This document shows, piece by piece, positions 13,553-48,700 of a stretch of DNA of 64,000 nt. The position numbers and the translations under genes are program-made. A model generated the notes under the pieces. The model was given only the letters and a program-made list of their open reading frames with translations, ran no database searches and was not told the origin of the DNA. Each line of letters starts with the position of its first letter. Position 1 is the stretch's first letter. This stretch comes from Asterias rubens (Eukaryota), in the NCBI RefSeq assembly GCF_902459465.1, contig NC_047072.1, positions 3,410,001 to 3,474,000 of the forward strand, read 5' to 3'.

Positions 13553-15375
13553 CTATTTCAAAACTGTCTTTCTTTTTAAAGACCTGCTTGAACGAAAATG
13601 TCAAGTCGTGAACTTTGCTGAATTCCATTTAAAATGTTTTCAATGAATTAGGAAATCGAGTCATATGATTATAAATAGGTTTGATTGTGTAAAAAAACAA
13701 TCATTTTGAATACCCTTATCCAGTGCTTTTCTGAGAGATTTTCGAAAAGCCCCGTTACGTAATCACTCTTAAAACGTCATAGTTGGGAGCTCCAATTTGT
13801 AAAGCCGCTTTGTTGCAGCGTGGAGGTATAACAAAGCAAACTCCCACAAATGACGTCAGCGGCATTGTCCTTTGGCGCGCGCTCTCAACGGCAGAAGTGT
13901 TTTTAGTTATTCAAAACCTTTAGGTTGGGGTCTGATTTTTTAATCGATAATTACGAAAAACTCAGAAGTGTAAACATATCAATTACATTAAAATGGTCAA
14001 CAAGTGCATTATAAACAAGTCTAAATACCATTTCCGTTAAAAACCTTCCGCTCAGGTAGCTGTTTAAACGTTTACGTACCAACGTAACAGATATCCAACA
14101 CTACATGATCAGCATTCCTGCATTGAAGCACCAGCCACTGCCATTCGTCCTTCTCACTTGGTGGAACTTGCTACAGCCCAAACTAATTCAGGATGAGCAC
14201 TAGTTGAATTCTGAACGTCAAGCTATGGAGATCATTATGTGCTGGATGTAGAACAATCATGAACTATAAGCCACATTGTTTAGTACACGCTTGTACTGTT
14301 AGGAAATGCAAGAAGAATAGCAAAAACCAGCTCCCTTGAACTACCAATATGACTATCTGGATGGACCGAGTAGATGAACAATACTTGTTTCGTTGGAGAG
14401 TTGAAAATGAACAATTGACTGAAAGGGGATGTTTGAAAAGTGGACAGTTTGTTTGTCATGTTGTATTCCTTTTTGCGTCATTTTGTAACTAAATTACAGT
14501 TTGTCTAAGTGACAAGACACAGCGTGTTGCTCTTGAAATTCGCAGTTGTTCTATAAAAAAACCCAGAATAAACAAGCAATATTAAAAACCTGCTTATTGC
14601 GCAAAGCATTTTGGCCAATTTGTCAACATGAGGTCGATATTGGCTGGTGACCAGCACATTTTTATTGTCATTTGTGGTGAATGAATGTATGATTGGTGTT
14701 GTTTTGGCCAATAAAATTCATTTGAATATCATTAAAGGGACACACCGGCCGAATTGGGCTATTTGGGCTACAAAATAGACTAAGATATGACTTCAACGGT
14801 CTTGCAGGAATGAAGAAGAACAGTCCTTAAAATAAAATCATCAAATTTAGCCGTTTTGAGCATTTTTCAAAAAAGTACGGTCACGTGATTTTTCCGAACC
14901 GATTTTTTGGTTCGGATAAATCACGTGATCTTTGGAGGTGGTCTTACTTCCAGCCGTATAAAAGTTAATTACTGCATCAAATTCAACTGTGATTTTAAAA
15001 AAATTGTTCATGAGTATTTGACAAAAGAGAGCATGTATTCATATTATGGATACAAATTATACATAATTATGAAAAATCGTGCTTAAAAACTTAATCCATA
15101 GAGTCCGGTCAATGGAAGCGTGATCCGGCGTGCAAGAGCGTCGGGGCTCACGAGACTCATAGTACACCGACGCATTATTCCACGGTCAGTGCCGTGGCTC
15201 GCGAGGCTGGAAGACTTTTTAGACGGCCTAGCTTACGAGCATGCATGATAGAAGGGAACCTGACTATCGATTACGTTTCATTATCATTAGTTTTAGTCTG
15301 TACACCTAGCTGTTTGTTCCACGTTACGTAGCTCGGCAGTCTCGGTGAACGACACGGTCTTGCTTGAATACCACG

Positions 15376-18300
15376 ATGTCAACTACTCCCCCAAAACAAC
15401 AAAACCCCGTCGGTGGCCTAGGCCGTCCTAAAAAGTCTTCTACTGAAAAACGCTCAACATCCATCGCAAAGGCTGCTAGAAGAAGGGTCACTTCTTCTCG
15501 ACGACAACGGGATGCTCGCTTGACATAAGTCATTGGTCAAGCCAACGTAAAACGATGGACGATGATGAGGGATAGACTCACCGGTGACCGTGATGACACC
15601 ATGAATGATGCATTCTTTGCCAGAATTTTAATGGACAGGTTTGTCTCATATAATTTTGGATAGGCCTAGGTTTATTTCAATCAACGAGGTAGTCAATAAA
15701 CATAGTAAAGACGTCAATATACTCTTTGTACAAGTCCGATGTTCACGACGACTAGCTGGCGCTGTGTTAGTGTTAGACTAACGTTCATGTAATTATTTAT
15801 AGATGTCGATCTTTCCAATAATTAATTAATTCTCGCCTTTTCTAATCTACATTTAAACACAGCCTAAAACAGGTCTCCCATGGCCCAAACATGCTAACCG
15901 TCAAAGTAATTGTTTACAACATACTTGCAAAATGAAAATTTTCTTGTTCAGTGTGTGCTAATAATATGACAATTTTACAAATTGGAAATGACAGTCGCTG
16001 GCTGTTGCTGTTGACACTCCATCATGTCTACGCACGTTTTCAAACATAAGTGTTGACATAGGCCTAAAAAAATATCGACCTTCAATTTTATATTCAGTTT
16101 GATTGTTAAAAAAAAAAACATTGAAAACAAACATAACGACACATGAATGTGAAGAAATTAATGTTATAAATGCTGTTTTTCTTGCCAAAACCAGGTATGA
16201 ACAATAGCAACAATTGTCATTTTGGGATTATGTCTATATAGGTATGAGACGACATCACTGCCTACTACAGGCCGACATGCATCCACTCCAGCAACTCTAG
16301 GCCATCATCAGCGCTTTCCCTCCATTTCTAGTGTCCACAGCAACAGAAGGTAACAAATGTTAGTCCATGATCAGAGACAGTTGTCTAGTCTTCATATTCA
16401 CAAGCCCATCCTTTCAATTGAAACGAGTCAGTTTTAAAACTTTGAACATTCAAAAAATAAGGTCAGCCCAAACAAACGGCAAGGATCTTTTTTAATATTT
16501 TGCATTTCATATTGTAAAATAGAATGTGTTTGTGCTTGATGTTTGATTACAATGGTGCTGTTGTTTTTTTCAGTCTCTCGTCTCCGAGTCAACTATCAGG
16601 CATTCAAGAGATTCCTCAGTCATCTCCAAAGCATCCAGTTGATGCACTCCAGACAGCTCATTCTAAAGTTATCACATCACATGAGCAAGGCTGTTATGAG
16701 TAAGTTCACCTTATTGAAATACAAGTTGGTTAGTCAGGAAAGGTGAGGGCAGGCTGTGCAATAATAAATAGTTATTTTGTTCTTGGATAATGATGCACCT
16801 GTTTCAGTTATATTTACTTATCATACTTCCTTTAAAATAAAAATTCTCAGGTTGATTTGTTTTTGGCTATTTCTTCAGTGAGTATCGCCAGAGCCTACTT
16901 GGTCCTTACGTAAGTCCAATTTGTACACTCTCTGCACCGATTAATTGCATCACACTATCTGTTCTGTTTATTACAGCATAAGTGTTAACTACTTGCAGAA
17001 AGGCAGCTATGTGTGTCCTATTGAGGAAATAACCGAACAAGAAGAAGGCGACGACAGTGTAGATGAAACATATGAGCCACTATCAACATTGACAATGAGG
17101 TAGGACATCAATGTCCTTAACATGGTACATGTACATGTATTTTCACACCTACCAATGGTCTTACTAAGACAGGTTTGTGAACACTGAAATGTGGCTGTGA
17201 TTGTCTCCCTACAGATTGCCTTGCTTTGTGCATGGAGCCTTGTGTAGCACTTGGCCATACTTGGTACTACAATTTATATCATGCCAACCATGTATTTTTC
17301 TAATAATTTCAGCTTCGATGATTTTGAGGGACAAATGCAAGATTTACCAGAGGTTTCTGTTGCTGACATTGTTTTTGACATGGAGAGTGACTGTGATGAG
17401 CATGAGGACGGTGGAATTAGTCTTGAGCAAGAACAACGGGTATCTTCAAGTACTGAAGAGTTGGCCATTGTGTACCATGACAACTTGCTGGCTTTGTGTA
17501 ATATGATAAAACCAAAATGCAGGATGAAAGGCTGTGGAGAAGTTGCTGTCCCTCAACTGAAGAAACATGGTTCTTCAGCCTCCATTTATTGGGCGAGTTA
17601 GAGGTTCGCAAGGCCTAAATTCCTTACACATATACATGTTTAGGGGGCACTATTTAAAAAAATAAAATAAATAAAAATTATTGAACAAGTCGCCTAACAC
17701 AAGGCCAGATTGCCATTAGATTCAAGATGTCAAACAATTTATACATAATGACAATATACATGTATTCATTATCATTTGGCTGTTATTGCACCAGCTTCGG
17801 GGTGTGTGGGTTTAAAACAAATGTAATGTAGTGTATTTAATTTTGTGACCCAACAAATGTTCTGCAGATTATGGGCCTTATGGGGTACACATAAGGAAGT
17901 TTTGTCCTTTTGTACCACATAACATAATTTAATAGAAAAAAAATTATCATAGGAAGATCAATGCTGTAAGTGTAACCCATGTCCATGTGAGGGATCGGGT
18001 TGTTGATGGGTCCAATGCTACATACATTCCTAATGTAACACAGATAAACTATACTGTTGATTTGATCGATATCCTTACAGAATTGCACAAAGACTCATGA
18101 ATGCAAGAGTTGGAGAACACAACCACAGTTGAATGGTGTCAACATGGGGGACATTGCCATGGATGCTGCCATTCTTTTTTCTGGGAGCCAGCATGCTAAA
18201 GTTCACATGATGTGTACTTTCATGAATCTAGGATGCCCAGGTTCTACACAGTTCTTCCAGGTCCAGCGGCTTTACGTTGTACCAGCAGTTGATGAGTTGT

Positions 18301-21300
18301 GGACCAGCATAGAACAAAAGACCATTGAAAGCAGACAAGACAAGGATTTAGTCATTTGTGGTAAGTCTGCATTTTAAAACATTAAATGCCCAACAGCCGT
18401 TGAGGTGTTTTTCTTTTAATCCAATTCCTCCAAAAGTGAGCTTTAATAAAAAGAGCTTTTTTATTTAGTGCGACCTGCCAAAATGAACCAGTACAAAATG
18501 AAACACATGCCTAATTACTGTAATGTGATGTTACTTACCGTACCAAAACCTATTAATAAGGCCTTATGTAGTTCTAAACACCGGGCCTTTCACACCCTGA
18601 TGTTGGAGGGATATCAAAGATGATCCCTTGAGCACAGAGAGTTCCATGTCAATAGAAGGATTAAATCCAAGTTATTTTTCTCCTACTGTTGTATTTCAGG
18701 TGACACGCGTAATGATAGTCCAGGTTTCAGTGCCAAGTATTGCACATATACAATGCTAGATGAGGCAGATGACAGCATCCTCAGAATGGGCTTCAAGGAC
18801 AAGCGAGAGTGCGGTGGGAAATCTCCAAACATGGAGACCGACGCGTTTGTTGAAGCCCTTGATGATCTTCAGCGCAAGTTGAAAGTTGTTGAAGTTTGCA
18901 CTGATTCAAGTTCATCCATAACCAAGAAAATGAGTAAGTAGTTTAATTACAATGTCTGTTTTTTCACAAGCAACACATAAACAATCTGGAAGGTATGTCC
19001 AAAATCAGTATGTTGCTAAATGCATTTTTTTTTAAATGACTTTTTAATTATTGATTTGGATGTTACTCGTGTGGACTGTTCCAATATGGTAATGATTAAG
19101 GTGTACTTTTTCAAATTAATTTATAGGAGAGAAATACAATGGTCTGAAACACTCCTATGATGTGTGGCATGCCGCCAAAAATCTGTCAAAGAAACTAACC
19201 AAAGTAAGTGTTAATTTATTTTTTGAAAATTAAGTAAACTTTTACAGTTTTGTTTAAACGTTCTATTTATCTTCAAGTACTGTTATTGCTAAGAATGTTT
19301 ATTAAGTTCTTAAACAGTTTAAATGTTCAATTTAAATGTTCAATTTGCTCAGTAAAATTAATCTTGAAACAGTGGATGTGAGTTTTGTTTTCTCCGTTTT
19401 CTAATTGGTTAGGAACTACGCCAATGTTGTTGACCTGAGGTTTTCACCCATTTGAAAGCTATCAGTGTGTGTGCATATTATCCAGCAAAAAGAGTCTATG
19501 TGGGATTGGAATGGAAGTTACTGAAAAAGGACCAATCGATTAGATTTTGGGGAAAATCCTAGTTTAGAAAGGCATACTTTAGAGCAAACTCTATTTCATT
19601 CTCGGTATTGGATAATTTGTATAACCCCTCTAACCTCTCAATTTACAGGCTGCGCAGAAAGCAGGCAATCGTGAGCTTTTGCGATGGACTTCAGACATCG
19701 TAACCCACTTTTGGCGATGTGCTGAGCTGTCGCATGGCAATGCCAAGACTTTTCTGGTAAGTGTTTACAAATTCAGTTAAATTTTTTTCATCGGTTGATG
19801 GTGTTTGCTTCGATCATTTTGGTTGTTACGACATGAAAAAGAACCCTACCTGCATGCAGCCATCTTGTTTTTTTTTTTACATTCAAAACAATGTAGCGAA
19901 ACTGAGGCTCGAAAGAGAGAATAGTCACCAACCTTTTCAAGAAAACATTAGCATAATAGCAGGTTTAGTCATGAATGTGCTACCATTTTGTTAAAAATCA
20001 TGCATTCACCAGATACACCTTCTGAGAACTTATCACCAAAACGATTAAAATATTTGTTAAAAAACACACAAGAACACAACTTTTGAATGTCTTGCTCTGG
20101 CTTGGATGAGTAATCTGGGTGATTAATTCATAGTTTATTGTCTTGTAGATGCGGTGGAGAGGCATTCTTCATCATGTGACGGGTGTCCACCAGTGGGTGT
20201 CTACACTTGGGGAAGGCTATGGCCCTGTCACATGTGAACATGGCAGTCTAAGATCCTGAAAGCTGATAGTCCACCACATAAGGCACTGCAGGAAATAGTC
20301 CTCAACCAAACCTTCCTCAAGAAGATTCCCTACTATGTAAATTTTCGGTGAGTAATATTTGTTGTCACACTTCATCCACAAAGTAATTTACTTTTTAAGA
20401 CAAGTCAAAAAAGCTAACGCTTCCAATGTAATTTAAGATTGTTCTTTGTTGGTTTGTTCTTTTTTTCTGATGTCTTACACACCACAAGCATCTGGCACAC
20501 TCTGTCGTTTGATCACAATGTCTTTGTTCATGCCCATGAAAATATTACATGTGAACATAAATGTTAACAGCAGTGTTAAGGAGAAGTTTTGGAAAATTCC
20601 AAAGAATTGATGCTCTGTGTAATTATGAGGACTCACAAATGTATTTGTTGGATTGTCACAGCAAACTGGCAAGCTTGAATCCTTCCACAATAATATTCTG
20701 ATGTACTGTTCTAAGCGGTTTGCCTACAGGTATGTAAAAGTGTTCAATGGTTTACTTCCAAGGGGGCTGGGGTGCGAGTGAAAGAGGGATTCAAGTTAAA
20801 AAACGTTTATAACTTTGGCCCCTAACAACCCCTTTGTAAACTGCACTGTAAATAACATTTATTTATTTACTTTGCAGTGGTCCAGTGTACAAGGCACGAA
20901 ATCAGTTGGCAGCAATTGATTACACAAAGCATCTTCACAGGAAACAGCGGAAAAATGCTCAGGGAAAGCTCCAGTAAGTGTTGTTTGTGATTGTTTCTCT
21001 TTTTTATTAAATCAAATACATACATTCTGCTATAACAAAAAGTGCAACTATAAGATCCTTGAGTATTATTTTCATAACTTATCAAACTGTAACAATGGTT
21101 AAATTTCAGGTACCACCGAGTCTACTCCAAGCACAGCAAGACTTGGGTAGTGAAGCCTGTTCTGGAAACCAAAAAGTACATGTACATCAAAAACCTGATG
21201 ACAAGAGTATTCCAAGGCAGACTCAATGACAGCGAGCCACTAAGCCGGAAATCTGTTATCCCAGAGGGCGATGCTAGACTGATTTCTACTACAATTGCTC

Positions 21301-21365
21301 CCATGCCTCCACCCCCAACAGAACAATTGGTCAAACAGCGTCAGACAAGATTTCCCAAAAAGTGA
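15376..21365 (+). pseudogene. Kolobok DDE transposase, 14 exons, disabled
   Basis: Exons 15376-15638, 16242-16349, 16574-16699, 16879-16909, 16999-17099, 17313-17592, 18081-18360, 18700-18933, 19127-19203, 19649-19756, 20149-20347, 20662-20729, 20878-20973, 21110-21365. Motifs GDTRNDSPGFSAKYCTYT, VCTDSS, YDVWH, KLESFHNNILMYCSKR. In-frame TAA at 15526-15528, frameshift in exon 11, phase mismatch at exon 12. Confidence 0.85.
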
Positions 21366-21661
21366 ATAACAACATGAGTTGCTGTGCCAGAAAGATTTAT
21401 ATTCATATTTGGGGAACAATACTACACCCAACAAAGCAATTCAAGTTATTTAAAGGGGGGGGGGGGTTCATCCTCATAGATGGGTTTTTGTTTGGTCGGG
21501 GGGGGGGGGTGTTCAAGTCTGCATTTGTTTTTAATAGGGGATCAGGATCAATCTTGGTCACTATCTGGTACTGCTATCTTCTGGTTGAATTGGTTACATA
21601 TAGTTTGATATTATACAAATATTGAGTGGCTCATAGTGGAATGGGAGGAATATTACTACAA

Positions 21662-21728
21662 GGTAAAATTTGGACTGTTCCATTTCATGAGGCAAAGCCG
21701 AGTGAAATGGAACAGTCCAAATTTTACC
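21662..21728. repeat. Short hairpin between the convergent 3' ends of the two Kolobok genes
   Basis: GGTAAAATTTGGACTGTTCCATTTCA-loop-TGAAATGGAACAGTCCAAATTTTACC, perfect 26-bp stem. Confidence 0.85.
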
Positions 21729-21843
21729 GAGTCCCAACTTCATGAAATGACCTATATGCTACATCAAATAAAATACGGTGAATATAATCACATGTAAAAA
21801 TGTGAATAAATGACAGACAAGCACACCCAAGGGTTATAGGGGC

Positions 21844-23427
21844 TTAGTTATACCTGTTAGGAATGAATCCGGTATATTGTCCAAATCTATCCGGAAAAGT
21901 ATCTCTAATTTTCCAAACACAACAGCTTGGTATGGTAACTCTGTTACCTGCTCCTAGTCGGCCATGTTGCCAAAGCACAAATTGTCTGTATGCAGAGTGT
22001 CTCATTCTTCTGTTGTACTCATCATTTTCAACCGGTGGGTTGTCGTTCTGCCCTAGCATATCATTTCGGTGCAATCTTGCAAGTTCCAACACATGATGGT
22101 CCAATACCAGATGCTGCATAATCTATTTTAAAAAAAGGATAATATTTTTTAATAAAATGATTAAAATATTAATCAAAACTTAAAAATATAAAGTCACTGT
22201 CTCACTTTTATATTTCCTTGCGTCCTGGCCCCATTCAATCCTTCGATTAACTTTTTTTAAAGCTAGTTCATTTTTTATTGTTTACTTCAGTGAACCACTT
22301 TTACAGCTACATGTACACACTACATTAGATGGCAGGGATTTATACTTCAACATTTATTGTAAACCAAAATATTTGGGAAGTTTATGTTACAACTGCACTT
22401 ACAGCTAGAGTTGAAATGCATCTTTGAGGGACCTGTCTGCAGCATAGACGCTCAGCATCAGTGGGCATCTCTCGGCAGTGTCCACAGACACACCAGCCTG
22501 GATCAGTTGTGGATGCATGAGGATGGGTTGCTGGTGGTGGCCCTGATGACTGCTGTTCAATTAAATTCAGAACAACACCAGGCATTCTCTCCGCAACATC
22601 ACTGAGTAGTTTCTTTCTACCATCCTCATCCATGTTCTCAACCAGATCCTGAAATTTTCGTATAAAAAGGAGTGCACATAGGCTTATCTTCATTTGTACT
22701 TGGGTGTAGAATGACACTTGGGTTCAGGCTTGAAATTATTCAAACTCAAAATGATAAGAGACCTACCTTAATCTCCTGCACTTTCTCATCCCTGGTTTTT
22801 GATAAAGCGCTTGACCCGACCTTCAGTCCTCGCCTGCTCTTTTTTAATACAGGACTGTAAATAATGAAAGTAATTGTTTTGTCAATAATTATCCATTTAA
22901 ATAAAATAATATACAAGTGCAAAAATGTGAACAAGTCATATTATGCACATGATATAACAAGTCTTTGTAAAATGTAAGAGTAGACAATATGAACAAGGGT
23001 AGGATAGATGATATATTTTCATTCAAATTATTTTCTAATAAATTTTCATCCCCTCAACATGCACAACCCTCAACCATTCTTATTTTCAGTCATGTAATAA
23101 AACACAGCATTTCTGCAGACTCTCCATACTCGTTTGTAAAATATAGTCTTAACCCAAATTCCTCAAACTCCTTCTTTTTGTCCTACCTAAATGAACCAAT
23201 ACATTTTGTACAAAATTTGGTTTCATTATTCTCAACTTGAGTACTTACCCATCGTCAGCAGTGGTTTGCCCAACGGTGCGACGTTGTCTGTTAGTGTTGG
23301 TGGTTTCTTTGCTCCTAACGGGTTTATCGTGTTTTTTAGACTTCTTACTTGATGATTTGTCAGCTTTGGAAGCTTTGGCTTTATGTTTTTTACCACGATC
23401 TTTGGATTTCGAAGGAACGTTTTCCAT
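21844..23427 (-). CDS. KolX-like protein with P2X7 C-terminal (ballast)-like Zn-binding domain, 4 exons, 263 aa
   Basis: Exons 23427-23249, 22854-22767, 22648-22403, 22122-21844 join in frame with GT-AG sites; motifs [17 protein letters not shown]...C and [34 protein letters not shown]...GQYTGF. Confidence 0.85.
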
Positions 23428-23938
23428 TGTTTATGAAGAAAATACATTTACAGCTGTGTGTGTGCGTGTGACCGTGTTTATGTTTACACACGTGCTGGAG
23501 ATATGCAGACTGGATCCTCGTGTCTTGACATAGTGATAATATTGACAATCAAAGCACCAGTCTACTTGCAACGTCGCGCGATATTGCAGCGTAAATTTCA
23601 CACTCGAAACGGCTGGTACAGCGTATACACTGACCCTTGACCTCTTTTGTTTTTTTTGGCTATTTTTCATTAATTAAGGGCCACTTTGATTTTTTTTTTT
23701 ACAACAACCATCTTAACATTGATTGTCTTTCTTTATATATCATTATTTAGCGTAAACAGTAAGCCGGTGTGTACCTTTAATACTTGTTTTAATTAACTGA
23801 CACACGCACGTGCCTTTCCAATGCCATTCTGCTGCGCGTGCCAATTAAGCATAATAAATACGCGCAAGTCCGACTTTAGGACGCTCAATCGTGACTGCGA
23901 TGGGTCAAGAACCTAAATGCCGGTTGCATATTTTTGTT

Positions 23939-24992: not shown

Positions 24993-26706
24993 TTACGCTA
25001 GCCAGTTGTTGAGTTCGCTGTGAATGTGGTTGCGTAAATTGAGGTATAACTCAAGGGCAGACTCGGGTGTTTCGGGATACACGGTTTCATTCTCTGTCAT
25101 AAACTGCAGGCAAATATTGAAAACATCCTGATCACAGGGAAAATCCCTTGAAACACAGTGCTGTAAACACGCATGTATCTGTCTTTGGTTCACTTCAACT
25201 CGGAAACTTGTTCGGCCAGACAGCTCTGGAATTGTATACAGGACTAAAGGCCGACCATTGGGAACGTTTGCATTTCGAGTTCTGGCGATGTGATGGGTGT
25301 TCCAAATGTGGACAACCTCATCAAGACCGTTCTGAAAAAGAAAAAAAACACAATGTTCAGTTCAAAAGTTTTACGCAGACATGTTACGAGAATAGATATT
25401 TAGGTAATTCCGACATGGAGTTCTCATTTCACAAATAATATACACCTTACGACAATTCGTGACAAAAATGGTGGGGGGGCATGAAAGTGATCCAATACAA
25501 CCTCAAACTCAATATAAGTACACGAAAGCGATACGTACATTGTGCATATACATCAAATTTAAAATGAAGACTATCTTTAATATTAAACCCCCCAAAATGG
25601 GCATTTGTAAGGGTTTAACAAGTTTCATTTAAGCTCGTTTAACAAACAATCTGCTACTGGCTTGCGGCAACTGCCTTATTTCAAAAGGATCCCCACGATA
25701 CATAATAGTGATCTATTGTGTGAAATATACAGATTTAACAAGAAATGTTGTTCTTGGCCTTAAAAATAGCAAGTTAAAGCGGCCAATACTAATCCTATTC
25801 GTTCAAACGTAAATTGTATTTCTGTGTTTTTACTTTTAGTTCCAAATATGTGCTACGTAACTTAAAGATTTCCAGTTAATTACCTGAATCAACTTCATGA
25901 AGCAGAATTGAAGCAAATTCTTATCGATGAAGTCTCCTGTGAAATACCCTTCGTCTTTGAGAAGACCAAAAAAGTCCATCCAGTACTGTGCAAATTCTCT
26001 TCGTAGAGTGCCCCACCATCGTTCTATTATCTGATCGTGTGGACTCGTTCCGTACAGAAACGCTTTTCTATTACCATTCAGAAAAATCTGCATGTCTCGT
26101 ACAGTGCCATTCTCTGTTCCTAGATCAGCCCGGACAAGTTTTGGGCATCCCATGCGATTCCTTACTGCCTCCATGTAGTAACCTGCTACCACCTGTGGGT
26201 TGTTGTTAGTGGTGTAAGCTTTCAGCCAAATTACAGCCCGGGAAAAAGCCATCAATGCATCCGTGAATACAGAAGCCGTAGTGCTTTAATTTATCATACT
26301 CGTCCATATGCCAAAGGAAATCTGGGCCTCTCGCAAAGTATGCACGCCGTTTTAGTCTCTTTCTGAGCCTACTTTCAACTCCCTCGGGATCTACAATTTT
26401 CAGCAGCAAACGTACAGTTTCCCTGTCCACGGTCAGCCCAGCTTGGACACATTTTGAATGCAGCCATCTGTATCCTTGGTGATTTCCTTGGTTTGTCTGG
26501 GTGTTAACAATGAACATGGCCACATCTAACAAGTCAGATTTGTGTTTTCTCCTGAAAAGTCCAAGCTTGCACAATTCACGCTTCAGGGTCCGCATACTGA
26601 TTATGATTCTATGATTCGCTGCTAAAGAGCACAGGATTTCCCTATAATTTAATCCAAGCTGGAAATAAACTTGTATCAATAAATCCCGTTCCATGTTGTC
26701 AAACAT
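24993..26706 (-). pseudogene. IS3EU-type integrase-core (DDE) transposase, 2 exons, one frameshift
   Basis: Exon 1 ~26706-25884 (RRAYFARGPDFLWHMDEYDKLK..GFCIHGCIDGFSR, VRADLGTEN, IERWW), +1 frameshift in the A5 run 26243-26247; phase-0 intron 25883-25332; exon 2 25331-24993 (LDEVVHIWNTHHI...GRP..LY..PEL...PCD...ALELY..LR). Confidence 0.85.
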
Positions 26707-26789
26707 TGCAAAATGCCGACAACAATTGCACGACTTTACGTCCTTATGAATGACAACCTGCCCCAATATCTGTTTTCAATTACAAGATT

Positions 26790-39728: not shown

Positions 39729-42700
39729 CTGGACAGAACAAAACAACATTATTTGAAATAATTGAAGACAAAGTAAGTCTTATCTTAATAAAAGCACTTC
39801 AATTTCAATCTAAAGTCTTTCTCGTTAAACTTGTATAATTTGTGGTTAGATGATCCCCTCACCTCTTTCGAGGTTGTATCCTAAACTTTTGTGTGACCTC
39901 TGACAGTATGCATAATCATTGAAAGGTTGAATGATTCTAACCCCTCGGCTTCACCTCGTTGAATTGGTTATCTTTGTTTGACAAGGGTAATGCCGATTAT
40001 TAGGTAGACCGTCCACATAGGGTCTGTGTCTGCCCGCAGCTCGCTGGAAAGCCGGCGTGTTGATCAGGAAGTCATTGGTTCCAATCCCGCTCTTAGTAAA
40101 TTAGTCTTTGTTCAATGCAACATTATTTAAAATGTAACCAGTCAGTTCCCTTAGTATTTTCTACTTGATCATTTGCACTTCCTATTAGTACCAATCCTTC
40201 AACTTAAAACGATTTCAAAAGTTGAGCAAATTGCAAATAGCAAACCAGTGTTGTTTATTTGGATAGCTACGGCTACAGGCATAAACTACCCCGGAATGGG
40301 GTAGTTCTATGATCTCCCTCGCTTTGTGGCCATTGGATCGTTTCTCGTAATTACACTAAAACAAACAGATCGACTTGTCGCAAACTTACAATGTCCTGTC
40401 TTTTCTTTAACGACATTTACGAGAAATGCTTTAGAGCAAACCCGGACGGGTTAAGGTGGTGCAACAAACGCCTTAACAAATGTTGGGAGAAAACGCGATG
40501 AGAAATCTTTTGCTGAAACAACCCAATACAAGCTGAGAAATCACAAACGTGTATTACAATAACAACACAAACATGAACAGGGTATCGATTAAGTTGTTCC
40601 CTCCCTCTAGCTTAAAAGTCTGTTTTAAATACATTTGATCTGAATAGTAAATAGATGCATCATGACATTGAGCAGAACTTCGCCTATCACATCCTTTAAA
40701 GATCAAGCATCGATCATTATTGCAAAGAGCATCGTGGGGCATTAAATGAAGACCCTATTACAACACATCATCTGAACTTACTTTCCGAATGCTTCCCCTT
40801 CTTCCAGAGTCTCAGGGAGTTTCTTGTGGTTAGTCTCTGGGAGAAGCAATGCAAGCAGACCCGCCAGAATGGACAAAGAACCAAACAAGATAAATGGCAG
40901 AGGTTCCCATACAGTCTTCAACTGTAGAATATAGGGAGAGAGGATACCCGCAACACGGGCAGCAGTGGATGACAAACCCATCCCGGCACTCCTGTATCAC
41001 AAAGGGGTTTAGGCAGTCATTCATTTATTGATTAATAATCAAAATATTATAAAACGTGAAACTCAAGATCATGTGTGTTAACATAATGAAACAATTATAA
41101 GTGCATGCCAAAGAAACAAGAAATATGCTTAAACAGAAAAAGAAGAATTCGGCCATAAAACATAAACCAGCCTTGCTTTGAATTAAGCGTTGGGACCTAG
41201 GCTCTAGAAATGAATTAATTTACCAACCTCTTTTAATCGACTAACTATTTTAATTGTGGACAAAGACAATTTTCAAATAAAAAAAGGTACCATTTCTTCA
41301 TAATCATAATGCAGTCTAAGAAACGATTGACTTTTTCAAGACATAATTTTATTCTTTCTTTTGGTACACACTTATTGCAGTACGTGCTATATTGTTTACT
41401 TGTCATTAATATTCTGTATGAGTTTAATATTATTTTATGTTTTACTTTTTTTTTATCTGGACGCATTGATTCGGTGCAAAACAAAGGTAAACAAATATCC
41501 TGGATAAAAACGGTTGGTTCCCTCAAAATAATAGCTCGTTTTCATTGCATAATAATCCTAGAATAAACGATTCTAATTCATAAGGCGAAGTTTGCCTTGG
41601 GACTTTACCGACCATCCTGACAAACGAGAGAGATTTACGTGAGATAGCGCTTAAAACCAGCCAGCAATCTAATCCTCATATTTTACAAGTCAAGTTTCCG
41701 TTAACCTAAGGGTCACTGGTTTCTAATGGTGGGCACGTAATCTCTTTCGTCATGATGGTCGGTAGCATCCCAATAAATTTTCGCCTAATAAATTCAATAA
41801 ACTTGTTTAATGTTAGGATCTAATGGGAGACTTTCTGGGACGATAGAGGGCAGCAGACTTACCGGGTAAATCCATTGTTCTCAGAATTATGCGCATGTTC
41901 AGAACTACGTAAACAATGGAAATTTACCCGGTATGTCTGCTGCCACCTAGCGTTGGAAAGTCTCCTATTGTTTACCACCATGACGTCACTACAGAGACCA
42001 CGTGAGATGTCTAGAGTAACGGAAACTTGACTTATCGAATTAGAGAACCACTAAAGAGTTGAAAAACATAATAATTATGTTAATAACATATGTAACACAG
42101 TTTCATCAACATGATTCAGACAACTTTATTGGATCAATTTGTGTTCAGATTTATTTGTGGTTAATTATATTAATTTTGGTTTTTACCCATACACCGATGT
42201 GTGTTAGCACTGTATACTCAGTACTTTCCCGAGTCCTGTGAAAAAATATCACAGGCATGTTACTCGGGTAACATGCCTGTGATATTTTTTTTATTTATTT
42301 TTTAACAGGACTCGGGAAAGTACTGAGTATACAGTGCTAACACACATCGGTGTATGGGTAAAAACCAAAATTAATATTCTTTATCCCCGATGGTTAATTA
42401 TAACTACACACAAAATTAAGAACCTTGTTTTATTACAATACGTTTCTTAAAGGGACACACCGGCTCACCGTTTACGCAATTTAGGGGTGTATAATCATAA
42501 ATAATGTTTTTATAGATGGTTGCTGTAAAATAAATCATCATAATGTCACGAATTTAGCGAAAAATGATTTTAAAAACCCAAAGCGGTAAAAGGCCAGCGT
42601 ATACGTGTTTCCAGCCGTTGCAACTGTCAGATTTTATATTATGGGAATAAAAGGGCAGTGACGAGTTAAAGCCGGCAGTGTCGTGGCCGTGTGATAAAGG

Positions 42701-45700
42701 CCCGAGCCGAGGTTAAAAGGCGTATATAGAAACTCGGTGAAAACTTATCCGTTTTCTGACGTCCCTGGCATGTTCATTTTTAAGAGATCAGTCAACCGGG
42801 GGATCGAGGTTGTTGGCTAACCCACACAAATGGTAACCGAAAGCCATCGTAGTAGAAGCGGCGTCTATTAATCAACTACGATTACCGACGATTACACCTG
42901 GACCAATGGCCGACCAGCGGGTTTCTACTTCGAAGTGGTTGCCGACAGTGCTGCGTTTTTATTGATCACAGAGATATATCTTACCACGATGTCACCACAA
43001 CGCTGCTTTTACGAATGGCGTTCACACTACGTGATTTTGCCCCGCTTATTGTAGGCTACGACCCGGCTATACGATTATTTTAAACATGTTCAAAATAAAC
43101 GTGGGGAGACAATGCGGCTTCCCGACATAGGAGATCCCACCCCGACAAAACCACGCCCATGGAGATCCTCCCACGTCTGGCCCATGATAGGCCCGCGATT
43201 GACCACGCTCTCGGCCACTTTTCCATCGTAGCAGAAGCGGTGTCTATGTATGACAGGTGTATAAACGACGGAGCAGGACAGATACACCCCCTCCGCAGCT
43301 GGTTGCATCGCACAATGACGGCTGCTGGCTGGTAATCGCTATCAAACGTGGAATCTGGGGGTGACGTCAGGATGTGAGGTAGAATTCGGGGTATAGAAAT
43401 AATTGTTTCTTGGAACACTGTTTCAAAAGAACGAAACGCCAATGTTTGTAACTGCTTTACCTGTTGATACGTGATTCTTTTACCTGTACCTTTAGGGGCT
43501 CGATCATCTTCCAATATTCCATCTAACTTCACTTTCCAGCTTTACATACCTTACAGGTGTAGGGAATATCTCTCCTGACACGACGTAGATAGTCGCAAAC
43601 GATGCTGTAATGCAAAACTTCCCAATCATGGCAATAACTGTCCTCACAATGCCCATTTCTGCATTTTAATCAAAGTAAATAAATCCAATACAGTTAGAAG
43701 CAACAAACAGCTGTTAATGAACAAAATACAAAAAAGTTACACGACTCTCAACCGTCACGGTCGTAGTTGTCTACGTGGTTGTTGTCTTTGTCGTCGTGGT
43801 AATCGTTGTCATAGTGGTTATGGTCATGTTCGTGGTCGAGGTTTTTTTCCTCATCACCATTGTCTTCGTGGTCATCGTGGTCGTCCTCAGCGTTGTTGTG
43901 TTGGTGTCGTTGTCGCTGTCCTTGTCGTTGAAGATTTTGTCACAGGATGGTTACTTGATGATATACAGGATAAGATTGACCATAGACAGTTTGGCAATGT
44001 TAAAGGTGTTTCCACCTCACACTACCTAACCCATTTAATGCATTATCTCTTTCAGGGAGCTGAGGAAAGTGGTAACCTGGGAACGGTGGTTCTTACCGAT
44101 TTCTCCAAGGCTTTTGACCTTATCGACCATACCCTCCTTATTGAAAAGATCATTGGCCTTGGAGTTCGTGGATCCATCGTTCCCTGGATTTGCGACTTTC
44201 TCCATCTCAGACAACAATGTGTTAAGTACAACAATATTCTTTCTGACTATGTGTTTTTAAAGGGTGGTGTGCCTCAAGGTACAACATTGGGTCCAGTTGG
44301 GTTTCAGATTGTAATTAACGATGCTGTTCAGGGCTCAAAATCTCAGTACTGGAAATACGTTGATGACCTGACATTTGCTGAGAATCGTAATATTTCTGAC
44401 CTGGCCATCTTCAGAATGACCTGTATTGCTTTCAAAAATGGTCTGATGAAAAATTACTCAGGCATAATCCCAGCAAGTGTCGGGCCCTCCAAGTAAGTTT
44501 CAGTAAAGCTCCTCCCCCAAAAACTTATCTTAAAATCGGTTCTGAATCTATTCAGACACTGAGGAGGCTAAAGTTCTTGGCATTGTACTTCAAAGCAATC
44601 TTAAATGGGATGCCCAAGTTAATGACATGATACGCAACAAAGCGAACAGACGTTTGTTTATGCTTAGAACATTGAAACGTTTTGGTTTTGACTGCAACGA
44701 ATTCAAAATAGTTTATGAAGGGTATGTGCGATCTACACTTGAATACGCTGATGTAGTTTGGCATTCTGGTTTGACAAAAAAACAAAGTGACGACATTGAA
44801 CAAATTCAAAAAAGAGCCTGTAGAACCATGGAGGAAGGAAGAGAAGGAGCTCGAACGAAGGGACTTCAAAAGTCGAACCTGCGGTACCGCGGTCGTTTAA
44901 CAACACCTTGTAATCACCCACATACCTTTATACAGACAATGGGCGACCTGGCATAATGTGAGTTTGCGCGTGTGCACTTGGTTCTTCACTCAACTATGGT
45001 GTCGTATGTCGTATGGATATAATACAGAAAAACAACTTTTTTGAGACCTGATAAAAATTGTGTACACTTGTGCCCACCAAATCGAAAAACACAATTGAAT
45101 ACCTACCACCCTCGTGTGGTAAAACCCAAATTTTGAACCACCGCTTGTGACCGGAAAGTCACAAAAAATGTAAAAATGTGCCATGATGTTTCCGTGAAAC
45201 ACTACAAACGGTAAATGAAAACATGTATATTCACAATTCTTGTCTCCAATGATTCAACTTTACAAGCAGGCAAGAGCGCAGACTGGCGATACCACACGTT
45301 CTGTACAAAGAGATCAAATCCTGCTTGTTAATCGGCCGTCCAGCTGGAGGTCTCCTATCTTTTTCCACTGGCCAGACAGGGGCATTGTCAGAGTATTCTT
45401 TTGTTACTCTGCGGTTTTGCGGGTCGTTCGAGCTCCTTCTTTTCCTTCCTCCATGGTAGACCCATCTTAGGTCATTCATATCTGTCTTATACTGATGCCT
45501 TAGAATTGTGTAATCTTGTCTCTTTATCTAACCGAAGGGTGGACCACTGCCGTGGATTTGCGGAGGGTTTGCCTAAATCAGACCGAACCAGTGGTCTCCT
45601 TCCTCCATCCAGGTTGGAAAGTCATGGCAGATGCCTCCGAAGTGCCACCAACATATCCCAGCTCCGTGTCAAAACCAATCGTTTTCAAAATAGCCCAATT

Positions 45701-48700
45701 GCTGATTTCATTAATTTGATTAACACCCAATGATTATGTTTTTTCTCTTTCTCTGGTTGCATTTTGAATTGTTGTTAGTCTTATTGATTGTTTTCCTCAG
45801 CCAGTCCTATTTCCGTGTGTTTTTGATAGCGTGTTTTTATCCTGCCTTCTATTTGTTTTACGTATTTTTTGTGCTTTTTTGTATTATTGCAGTTCATCAT
45901 TGTTTGTATTCAACCAGTCCTGTTCTTGTAATAATAATTATATCAATAATAATAATATGTGTTTTTTAATATCTTTTTATATTTATAATATTAATTATAT
46001 CAATAATAATAATGTTTTTACTTTTTAATTATTGTAAATCATGTGCAATTTGGCCTGTGGGCCACGAAATGTGATTCCAATAAAATGAAATGAAATGAAA
46101 AAAAATGAAAACTAATAATTGTTTTCTTCTTATGTGCCAATGGAAACTAAATTTCTGTTTATTTATGATGCAGACAATAAAACATTCTAATTGTAATTGT
46201 TATTTTGGTTTCGAAATAGTATTTTTTTACCTAGGAAAGCAGTAATGACGCAAGCAATGCCTCCAATCAACATACTGCCGCTCAGGTTATATCTACGGCC
46301 GTACTGCAAGGCGAAGAGGCAGAAGATGAGAGACGGGAATTCCACTAAACCTGAGATTGCTGCTGCCACGTAGTCATCAACCCCGAGATCTGAGGTGCTC
46401 AAACCCAATCCATAGTACACCATGCTGTTCACTGCCCTGTTGTATAGGAGCGAATGTATACAGGGTCAAACTGACGAGAAACGTTTGTAAACGATGTCTG
46501 TTCAAAATCACAAGTGAAAGAAAGATTTCTTTGTGAAACACACAAGGTTTTATACGCATTTGTTGGCATCTTCTGATCTTACTAGAAGCTATACTTACCA
46601 GTTAAACATCATATTCAACGTCTTAATGCACATGTTTGGAGAAGCAAACAGACCAAATGCAGTTTGCTTGGCTGCCGAGTGCGTTTCAGCCTGGTAAAAA
46701 TGAGACAGTTTGTACACTTCGATTAAGTTAAGACGGAAGCAAAATACACAATAAGTAAAGGCATATAGGATTTGAGGCATTGCATGGTGAGGTATCAAAG
46801 TATATTTGGTTTGCGGTAACACTATGTGTGTATCTAAATTGTTCTTAGGGAACTGTCTTGCTTTATTCTACTGCCGCGGAGTAGATAATCGGAGGTTTGG
46901 GAGACTTATCAGTTCTGAAAAGAACTGTCCTGTGCCCAATTTCATAGAGCTGCTTAACGGTAAGCAAATTTTTTCGCTTAACGTAGCAAAAATAATTGCT
47001 TAAAACCATTCGGATTCCATGCTAAACGTACACGAGCTTAAGCACGTAAACAATCTCCGCGCGGAGATTTTAGATCGTTTGCTTAAGCAAAACAGAAGAA
47101 GGCAGTGTATTTTGCACTGTGTGCATGGCCTAGGGCTGCTTAACGGTAAGCAAATATGTTGGCTTAACGTAGCAACAAAAATTGCTCAACCGTAAACCTA
47201 TTTCACCAGCGGTTGCTAGCTTAAGCACGTAAACAAACTGCGCGCGCAACATTTTAGATCGTTTGCTTAAGCGAAAAAGAAGAAAAAATGGCGAAAATGA
47301 CAAAATGGCGGGCGAAATAAATGCGGAGTGCACTCGAGTGGCGATAAAAAAAATTCATCACCTTCTGTGTCTGATATGTATTATTTGTAATGGTTCAAAG
47401 TACCCCTCGAAAGGTTTACACGCTTACTTGAAAGTAAACAAGAAGATAATACATTGTACAGCATGATTCTGAAGATTTTAGACACTCGTTTATTCGCTAC
47501 ACCTACCATACAAACGCACGTACAATCACCGCTGTGCCGGCACAATAACATCGTTTGCAATGAGTGTTGTACTATGCGCTGTGTGAATAGGGTGCTTAAG
47601 CAAAATAGAGGCTTTAAGGACCCTTTTTGTTTGCTTACCTATGTAAGCAAAAAACCTTGCTTAAGCAAGGGTATGAAATGAAAAATTTGCTAGTTGCGCC
47701 CGTTAAGCACAAAATCGACCGTTACGGGATGCAGCTCTTTGAAACTGGGCCCGGCGCTTAAACAGGGTGCTTAAGCAAAGGGGCTTTAAGGACCCTTTTT
47801 GCTTGCTTGCCTCGCCGTTTTAAGCAAAAAACCTTGCTTAAGCAAGGCTATGAAATGAAAAACTTGCTAGGTGCACCCGTTAAGCACAAAATCGACCGTT
47901 AAGCAGCTCTATGAAATTGGGCCCTGATTTTAACTATTGCGCCTTGTCTCTCAAGTGCTATGATTCGAGCCTGATCCCAATCTATGACATGGTCTAAATC
48001 GGTGGAGTGTTTGACAATGGTTGATTTGTCATATTCCCCTCTGCGGCCGTGTGCTTTATGTTCTTTTAGCCTGGTAGTTAGGTCTCTACCGGTCTTGCCA
48101 ATGTACACTTTACCACAAGTACAAGGAATTCGATAGACCCCTGCCTGACTGCTAGAGTCATGCTTGTCTTTATGAGTGTGTAGATTCGTTTCCAACTTGT
48201 TGCGAGTTCGGTAGTAGACCTTGATTTCTGCCTCAAGGAGGATCCGTTGAATTTTGTGTGAGGTATGGAAGGACCGCAATGGGCATGATTGTGCAGACTG
48301 AGAGTTGTGTTTTGAAAGGGACTCTCGTTTGTTTGGTCTTTACCCATTCTCTTTTAGCACTGTGTTAAGGTGCTCCAGTTCAGTAGGTAAATGTTCCTTG
48401 TCACAAATAATGTGTGCCCTTTGAAGTAGGGTTCGGTTCACTGAGGCTTTCACAGAAGGAAGATGGAATGACCGAGCGTTGAGGTAGCGGTCTGTATGGG
48501 TGGGTTTTCTGTACACGGAGTGTGCTAGAGAACGATCAGTCCTCTTGGAAATGAGTACATCAAGGAAAGGTAATGAATCGGATGTCTCAGTTTCCATGGT
48601 GAACTGAATGTTCGGATGCTGGCGGTTAATATGACTAAGGAAGTCATCAAGGTTTTCCAATCCATGTGACCAAATGATGAACGTGTCATCCACATATCGG

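Follow-up and report, generated by a model that had tools for sequence, protein, structure and literature searches.

The closest described relatives of the element reported here are the Kolobok DNA transposons of the Kol0 (Kolobok0) lineage, of which Kolobok-1_XT is the archetype and Kolobok-1_SKow and Kolobok-1_NV are also members (Kapitonov and Jurka; Kojima and Bao, 2022, PMC9587614). The KolX protein of this lineage adopts the fold of the ballast domain of P2X7, and it has been argued that P2X7 originated when KolX became fused to a P2X4-like gene (Kojima and Bao, 2022, PMC9587614); the joining of receptor and ballast was placed in jawed vertebrates by Rump et al. (2020, PMC7016195). The central idea that the ballast is at home in Kolobok is therefore not new, since it was already put forward by Kojima and Bao (2022). 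The initial annotation of our locus, which called KolX a protein of unknown function and presented its native context as novel, had been overtaken by that work on both points.

The element comprises 9,049 bp at positions 14732-23780 of the window, by which we mean the whole 64-kb stretch of Asterias rubens (A. rubens) DNA that was analysed, and corresponds to about 3,424,732-3,433,780 of LR699102.1. It is very probably a single copy of a Kolobok DNA transposon from the Kol0 lineage, inserted at TTAA and carrying, in convergent orientation, genes for a DDE transposase and for KolX. Its ends, and the repeats that they enclose, are located as follows:

14732-14735, no strand: left TTAA target-site duplication, read directly (a member of inverted pair I10)
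14736-14749, forward strand: left terminal inverted repeat (TIR) with a 5'-AG (RR) start, AGGGACACACCGGC, 13/14 complementary to the right end
14881-14928, no strand: subterminal 20-nt palindrome pair with CACGTG, located 5' of the transposase start (pair I6, 95% complementary, 8 nt apart)
21599-21731, no strand: part of a palindromic short repeat of very high copy number, lying in the spacer that separates the 3' ends of both genes (pair I1)
23763-23776, reverse strand: right TIR with a CT-3' (YY) end, pairing with the left TIR at 13/14
23777-23780, no strand: right TTAA target-site duplication, read directly

The TTAA duplications and the 14-bp TIR that had been noted earlier were thus both recovered, and the termini (5'-AGGG... 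...ACCT-3') are of the RR/YY type found in the Kolobok superfamily. TTAA is also present in a second A. rubens copy (L001), at the end that is preserved, and at both ends of an element from A. amurensis (L003). The 18-mer made up of TTAA and TIR occurs three times in the 64-kb window, where 0.06 occurrences are expected; the third terminus lies at 42447, with 188 bp at 70% similarity, and no further full copies were found in the window. The high-copy repeat fragment contains a perfect 26-nt hairpin (21662-21687 / 21703-21728) and has a summed contig depth of about 1e5, compared with about 270 in the vicinity; loose ends are numerous at 21606-21608 and 21731. It is also found in L001.

The locus is assigned to Kolobok on the basis of its ends, its architecture and the signature strings it has in common with published families, and the identity first proposed for it is upheld by the TTAA, the RR/YY termini, these strings and the gene pair. 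The transposase strings SAKYCTYTM, DVWH, and LHHV, and the motifs DSPG and LESFH, recur in Kolobok rows of Data S5 of PMC9587614, including those of Kolobok-1_XT, Kolobok-1_NV, and Kolobok-1_PiPr, with an exact SAKYCTYTM in Kolobok-1_XT. The motifs follow one another in the order DSPG block (exon 8), CTDSS (exon 8), YDVWH (exon 9), and KLESFH (exon 12), each lining up with the Kolobok rows in comparisons that consisted of short-string searches and by-eye, not computed, alignment. Exon 11 reads LHHVTGVH...CEH, a zinc finger that comes after DxxH and ahead of the catalytic E, with the same pattern in Kolobok-1_NV, Kolobok-1_PiPr, and Kolobok-14_CGi; a zinc finger in this place, after C/DxxH, is present in all Kolobok lineages except Kolobok1 (PMC9587614). 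A Pfam scan of ten transposase exons assigned no family and gave a weak Mutator match only (E 0.024), Pfam being without a Kolobok model.

The exon model of the transposase gene is backed by exon-by-exon tblastn against the intact 750-aa gene of A. amurensis (40-95% similarity, exon by exon) and by the signature strings. The gene and its lesions are:

15376-21365, forward strand: Kolobok DDE transposase gene, 14 exons, broken in the window copy
15376-15638, 16242-16349, 16574-16699, 16879-16909, 16999-17099, 17313-17592, and 18081-18360, forward strand: transposase exons 1-7
18700-18933, 19127-19203, 19649-19756, 20149-20347, 20662-20729, 20878-20973, and 21110-21365, forward strand: transposase exons 8-14
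15526-15528, forward strand: in-frame TAA nonsense codon inside exon 1 (the homologous A. amurensis exon reads through)
17593-17594, forward strand: weakened splice donor of exon 6, with GC in place of GT (17594 is T in contigs of runs X1, X4, and X5)
20240-20241, forward strand: point in exon 11 where 19 nt have been deleted (19 extra letters in the X4 and X5 contigs; the A. amurensis exon is continuous)
20661-20662, forward strand: point at the exon 12 acceptor where 1 nt has been deleted (the X4 and X5 contigs have an additional G)

The exons add up to 2,227 nt, which is no multiple of 3, and restoring both deleted stretches gives 2,227+19+1 = 2,247 nt, or 749 codons. The frameshift caused by the exon 11 deletion leads to a TGA at 20257-20259, and the frame is open with the 19 letters of the X4 and X5 contigs; the phase of the exon 12 acceptor is mismatched with the exon 11 donor at 20347/20348. 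The public annotation runs past the exon 6 donor to a TAG at 17599-17601 and breaks the gene into three products of 190, 248, and 126 aa. Hence the 14-exon DDE gene of the initial annotation is sound as an exon model, but it is no open frame in the window copy, given the TAA, the 19-nt and 1-nt deletions and the GC donor. For the same reason, the description of the element as "complete" is true of its ends and gene content, but not of its coding capacity. The uninterrupted transposase frame that marks an autonomous copy is absent here, and the window copy is unable to make its own full-length transposase. It is presumably non-autonomous, and would be mobile only if an intact relative supplied transposase in trans, as a relative of the kind encoding 750 aa in A. 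amurensis might. Members of the family would move by DDE cut-and-paste at TTAA.

The second gene, on the opposite strand, is intact:

21844-23427, reverse strand: KolX gene, 4 exons, 263 aa, intact, convergent to the transposase gene and inside the TIRs
23427-23249, 22854-22767, 22648-22403, and 22122-21844 (with stop), reverse strand: KolX exons, all introns GT-AG

The protein is exactly RefSeq XP_033635705.1 (A. rubens), with the exon translations at residues 1, 61, 90, and 172, so that both the convergent 4-exon, 263-aa gene reported earlier and its designation as KolX, the ballast-domain gene inside the element, are confirmed. RefSeq annotates it as a gene product that is still labelled "uncharacterized". 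Evidence for its expression is one contig without KolX intron 3 in public run X5, the kind of which is not on record, such that a processed DNA copy is possible and not only RNA; contigs of run X23 (guessed to be RNA) extend over no more of the element than the high-copy repeat and a short piece of 3' sequence, and none of the listed runs is recorded as RNA.

KolX has a basic, disordered N-terminus followed by residues 81-257, which, by sequence and predicted fold, are a ballast domain with zinc cysteines, the same as makes up the C-terminus of vertebrate P2X7. We carried out the two comparisons that had been proposed for this resemblance. The Pfam P2RX7_C profile matches residues 81-257 of the whole protein at E 1.3e-36 (126.8 bits, against a gathering cut-off of 23.5), and the single exons 4 and 3 at E 3.7e-20 and 7.4e-10, respectively; among PDB sequences, KolX matches the human P2X7 chain 9e3m at E 3.6e-22. 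The AlphaFold model has a pLDDT of 84-97 at residues 81-120 and 90-96 over most of residues 141-250, with a dip to 59-72 at 121-140, and when searched with Foldseek it returned P2X7 chains only (14 matches, probability 1.00, E 4e-7 to 1e-5), most superposing with an rmsd of 2.5-3.1 Å over about 125 columns. Sequence, profile and predicted fold thus agree over the C-terminal two thirds of KolX. Using the residues given by Rump et al. (2020, PMC7016195), we found that C142, C144, C147, C158, C159, C166, C238, and C239 align with the zinc cysteines of P2X7, all of which are kept; among 46 relatives in our alignment (A1), C144, C147, and C159 are invariant and C142, C158, C166, and C238 nearly so.

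An intact KolX beside a defective transposase might also mean that KolX at this locus has ceased to be a transposon gene and, as the linked transposase decays, is retained either by the host or by the family of transposons, for which it would act in trans. The locus would then be at an early stage of domestication, of the kind put forward for the P2X7 C-terminus and zebrafish nanor. In each of the two A. rubens copies that we examined, an intact 263-aa KolX adjoins a transposase that is broken (window) or truncated (L001, which is at another locus and starts exactly at TTAA and TIR). Between the two copies, the ballast core (residues 141-257) has accumulated 2 synonymous and 0 non-synonymous changes, and KolX outside the core 2 synonymous and 8 non-synonymous changed codons, the last two codons being among the 8 and possibly a single event; the X5 contig without intron 3 is likewise consistent with a retained gene. 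However, these are very few substitutions (P of about 0.06 for the core), and an intact 792-nt KolX frame is expected from youth alone, because the copies are just 1.9% apart. Selection on the active master lineage, prior to insertion, is also recorded in how copies differ. Retention apart from the transposase appears unlikely to us, and we are similarly doubtful that KolX would be kept both intact and expressed at copies with a dead transposase, with selection acting on it independently of that transposase. Were this so, KolX might regulate the whole family in trans, or might be at the outset of capture by the host, as in the case of nanor and the P2X7 ballast, and sea stars would offer a live intermediate of that capture.

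An assignment to the piggyBac superfamily can draw on the fact that piggyBac is likewise TTAA-specific and a TTAA duplication is present, and on the few piggyBac families with a KolX-like protein noted by Kojima and Bao (2022, PMC9587614). We rejected it as extremely improbable, since the element ends in AG...CT, as opposed to CCC...GGG in piggyBac, none of the ten exons scanned matches the Pfam piggyBac transposase model, the exons carry the Kolobok strings and the DxxH motif, and KolX in the window has all of its cysteines, most of which are reported to be missing from the piggyBac-borne versions. We dismissed with the same near-certainty the idea that, in the small gene, we are dealing with a piece or a relative of a P2X7-type receptor gene of the host, as the NCBI name of the small gene's A. 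amurensis relative ("P2X purinoceptor 7-like") might imply, for KolX has no P2X channel part (Pfam finds P2RX7_C only), it is enclosed together with the transposase by the TIR/TTAA boundaries, the pair recurs in four other animals, and the receptor-ballast fusion itself is dated to jawed vertebrates (Rump et al., 2020, PMC7016195).

We return to KolX as the second gene of a Kolobok transposon. Its basic, NLS-like N-terminus, followed by a zinc-stabilized and possibly guanine-nucleotide-binding module, would suit a nuclear accessory factor that modulates or assists the transposase. A putative role as a nucleotide-dependent regulator of transposition, as initially suggested, is conceivable, but we hold it only tentatively, and the replacement of two of the five GDP contacts of the rat protein counts against it. 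XP_033635705.1 and the intact 750-aa transposase of A. amurensis are a concrete pair for a worthwhile first biochemical test of KolX, although such a test is not made newly possible by the window locus, which is a cleanly bounded sea-star example and a modest addition to the published link between Kolobok and the ballast. Convergent KolX/transposase pairs are also found in Antedon (crinoid), Ptychodera (acorn worm), and Crassostrea (oyster), and the adjacency of "P2X purinoceptor 7-like" annotations to Kolobok transposases at six loci in five animals is an independent confirmation of that link.

The A. amurensis element (CP134959.1, L003 9607-21844), which is bounded by TTAA and AGGAACACGTTG, resembles that of the window in its TTAA + AGGAACAC... 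inverted ends, its matching exon structure, and a KolX gene that is convergent with the transposase and encodes 224 aa, 65% identical to KolX of A. rubens. It differs in being a separate family, alignable at the DNA level in exons only (68-82%), in having its transposase annotated as one intact 750-aa product, and in its location within an intron of a PARP14-like gene. With the Kol0 lineage in general, the window element has in common the TTAA duplication, RR/YY termini, a DDE transposase in which DxxH is followed by a His/Cys zinc finger and then the catalytic E, and a second gene, KolX, with a ballast domain. On visual comparison, the KolX sequence fits the Kolobok-1_SKow row in Figure S6 of PMC9587614 well. 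The window element is set apart by its sea-star origin (PMC9587614 names no Asterias family), the disabled transposase of this copy, and the high-copy palindromic repeat fragment between both genes.

Compared with the vertebrate P2X7 ballast (PF20478; rat 6u9v/6u9w, human 9e3m), KolX is alike in predicted fold and in the cysteine pattern WCxCGxC...CC...C...CC, and is 34-37% identical over about 125 residues. Three of the five GDP contacts of the rat protein are kept (R546, H547, and R578, as R212, H213, and R244), as is the equivalent of Y550 (Y216), whereas R574 and K583 are replaced by V240 and D249. The same three GDP residues are retained by the ZCD proteins of sea urchin and acorn worm (PMC7016195). 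Unlike the P2X7 ballast, KolX is a free-standing, transposon-encoded protein of 263 aa with a basic, disordered N-terminus and without a channel part. The stand-alone ZCD/nanor-like proteins are likewise short, vary at the N-terminus and have their ballast/ZCD domain at the C-terminus. However, while those proteins are treated as host genes with conserved synteny (PMC7016195), KolX adjoins a Kolobok transposase in the window and at the 5 other loci examined.

The element at 14732-23780 is a structurally complete but coding-defective Kolobok copy of the KolX-bearing Kol0 lineage. Its transposase gene lies on the plus strand and its second, accessory gene, KolX, on the minus strand, as follows:

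14732-23780: whole element, with TTAA at each border, read from the sequence
15376-21365, plus strand: 14 transposase exons, modeled from stop-to-stop segments and splice-site motifs
23427-23249, 22854-22767, 22648-22403, and 22122-21844, minus strand: four KolX exons, joined in frame through GT-AG introns, 263 codons

The TTAA target-site duplications and 14-bp terminal inverted repeat (TIR) described in the initial annotation were borne out. The 14-nt repeats lie directly inside the TTAAs (left, AGGGACACACCGGC; right, the reverse complement of AGGTACACACCGGC) and pair at 13 of 14 positions; TTAA plus the repeat occurs three times in the 64-kb window, against 0.06 expected by chance. The termini, 5'-AG...CT-3', conform to the RR/YY rule, which sets Kolobok apart from piggyBac (PMC9587614). 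The third occurrence of TTAA and AGGGACACACCGGC, the same as the left TIR, is a separate Kolobok terminus at 42447 (42447-42634), which over its first 188 bp shares 70% similarity with the end of the element on the KolX side, to which it runs inverted. The window yielded no second terminus to pair with it, and an RVT_1 reverse-transcriptase ORF (43717-44496, plus strand, E 7.5e-15) lies shortly past it; this terminus is therefore possibly a truncated or interrupted Kolobok relative, or a MITE. Other mobile-element ORFs in the window encode an integrase-core fragment (26206-26766, minus strand, E 1.4e-6) and a GIY-YIG nuclease domain (47899-48279, minus strand, E 2.5e-6).

The four KolX exon translations are all contained in XP_033635705.1 (LOC117296768, "uncharacterized", Asterias rubens), at residues 1, 61, 90, and 172, and the convergent 263-aa gene first proposed from the sequence is therefore exactly the RefSeq model. 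Its record locates the window on LR699102.1 at 3,410,001-3,474,000 (assembly GCA_902459465.3). We reached this protein through a HMMER search of the whole protein library with exon 4, which returned 1,593 cluster representatives; the best was an A. amurensis protein labeled "P2X purinoceptor 7-like", which led to a 90% cluster that includes XP_033635705.1. Searched singly, exons 4 and 3 matched Pfam P2RX7_C, the profile of the zinc- and GDP-binding cytoplasmic ballast of vertebrate P2X7, with E values of 3.7e-20 and 7.4e-10, respectively; exon 4 also matched human P2X7 chain 9e3m (E 6.5e-13). Whole-protein searches, for which we used XP_033635705.1 as identical to the spliced model, confirmed the suggested likeness to the ballast, with E 1.3e-36 against P2RX7_C over residues 81-257 and E 3.6e-22 against PDB P2X7 chains. 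The first 80 residues are basic, of low complexity, and predicted to be disordered.

An AlphaFold model built with 46 relatives is confident across most of the domain: pLDDT is 84-97 for residues 81-120, drops to 59-72 at 121-140, and recovers to 90-96 through most of 141-250. Structural comparison agreed with the profile: Foldseek matched the model to P2X7 structures alone (14 chains, probability 1.00, mostly rmsd 2.5-3.1 Å over ~125 columns at 34-37% identity), and the next match had an E of 2. In the alignment, KolX has every cysteine of the dinuclear zinc site, and these residues are invariant or nearly so across relatives. Among the rat GDP contacts R546, H547, R574, R578, and K583, three of five are retained (R212, H213, R244), the remaining two being V240 and D249; proteins of sea urchin and acorn worm show the same pattern, according to Rump et al. 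(PMC7016195).

Pfam holds no model for this transposase, its sole match being a weak one to Mutator (E 0.024). The motifs run in the order DSPG block, SAKYCTYTM, CTDSS, YDVWH (the DxxH signature), LHHVTGVH...CEH (a zinc finger ahead of the last catalytic residue), and KLESFH, and the same strings, or near variants of them, can be read in Kolobok sequences that Kojima and Bao aligned in Data S5 (PMC9587614), among them Kolobok-1_XT, -1_NV, -1_PiPr, and -14_CGi. Exon by exon, the protein is 40-95% similar to an A. amurensis gene annotated with a single 750-aa product, and the colinear, convergent KolX/transposase pair recurs in Antedon (a crinoid), Ptychodera (an acorn worm), and Crassostrea (an oyster). 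On these three grounds, the large gene is identified as a Kolobok transposase. The 14-exon DDE gene of the initial annotation stands in its exon model, but its reading frame is broken in this copy.

The 14 exons total 2,227 nt, a length not divisible by three. We aligned contigs of four public sequencing runs to 17500-23490. Contigs of runs X4 and X5 have 19 additional letters after 20240, with which exon 11 is open throughout, as is the A. amurensis exon, and without which a TGA arises at 20257. Both also have one additional G at the exon 12 acceptor, restoring phase with a strong donor at 20347/20348. With both deleted stretches the exons sum to 2,247 nt, or 749 codons, which validates the exon model and establishes two frameshifts in the window copy; a further run, X1, has the same two deletions. 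In addition, an in-frame nonsense TAA (15526-15528) interrupts exon 1 in the middle of a block aligned to an open A. amurensis exon, and the weakened exon 6 donor is GC, versus GT in three runs. In the assembly's annotation, the region is divided among three gene products (190, 248, and 126 aa), which end at lesion-made stops. The copy, initially described as complete, is therefore not coding-competent, given four transposase lesions (the nonsense codon, the 19-nt and 1-nt deletions, and the GC donor). The X4 and X5 contigs (organisms B and C) have an additional T after 20693 that would shift their own exon 12 frame, and on this sequence evidence those copies may also be defective, in a different way.

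Two non-coding features lie within the element. At 14881-14928, 145 bp inside the left end and upstream of the transposase start, a 20-nt palindrome pair with two CACGTG boxes could be a putative promoter or binding element. Between the convergent genes, 21599-21731 holds part of a short palindromic repeat (a perfect 26-nt hairpin) that is extremely abundant, with a summed contig depth of ~1e5 versus ~270 over the remaining element; other genomic copies run past 21731 with a mirror image of 21625-21655. The second A. rubens copy carries this repeat too; the repeat is therefore older than the split of the two copies.

That second copy, on another chromosome (LR699109.1), encodes a KolX 97% identical to that of the window (XP_033642419.1). 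It matches window 23780-20429 over 3.7 kb at 95-98%, begins exactly at TTAA and the TIR, and has a flank unrelated to the window's; the family has therefore transposed. Similarity ends in transposase intron 11, so that KolX is retained and the transposase is reduced to its last three exons. The two KolX frames differ by four synonymous and eight non-synonymous codons, two of the latter, at the very end, perhaps being a single event. No non-synonymous change falls in residues 141-257, a suggestive conservation of the ballast core, in counts too few to carry weight. In A. amurensis, an intron of a PARP14-like gene contains a related 12.2-kb element (CP134959.1, locus L003, 9607-21844) with perfect TTAA and AGGAACACGTTG ends. 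Its KolX, convergent with the transposase, has 224 aa, and the transposase, at 750 aa, appears intact, which makes this element a candidate for an autonomous relative.

A 709-nt contig of X5 joins 22122 to 22403 exactly, removing KolX intron 3, and depth in the KolX introns is 1.1 at 22100-22299 and 0 at 22700-23099. This fits spliced KolX RNA. None of the public runs is catalogued as RNA, X5 being of unstated kind; one contig extends into intron 1, and X5 covers the transposase region with its introns included; the contig could instead be a processed DNA copy.

KolX might act as an accessory partner of the transposase, probably nuclear, Zn-stabilized, and possibly guanine-nucleotide-binding, a role we propose tentatively and rate as less likely than not. 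In practice, these results can guide the relabeling of sea-star genes named "P2X purinoceptor 7-like" or "uncharacterized", and the selection of candidates for an initial assay of KolX. Database annotation presents some proteins with the ballast domain as fusions: one from Branchiostoma belcheri, of 1,083 aa, contains two stretches of ballast, and a killifish "Gypsy retrotransposon integrase-like" protein combines PF17921 with PF20478. Nested transposons joined into chimeric gene models may account for these.

The central proposal, that a Kolobok copy gives the native context of the P2X7 ballast, is correct but not new, since it was published by Kojima and Bao (2022; PMC9587614), and the premise that the nature of KolX was unknown is out of date. 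In that study, Kol0, the first-described group, encodes a transposase and KolX; KolX has the ballast fold and clear similarity to human P2X7 residues 476-595; and the ballast-like proteins described by Rump et al. belong to Kolobok transposons. The same authors derive P2X7 from a P2X4-like gene that became fused to KolX, and regard Nanor as probably a domesticated KolX (PMC9587614).
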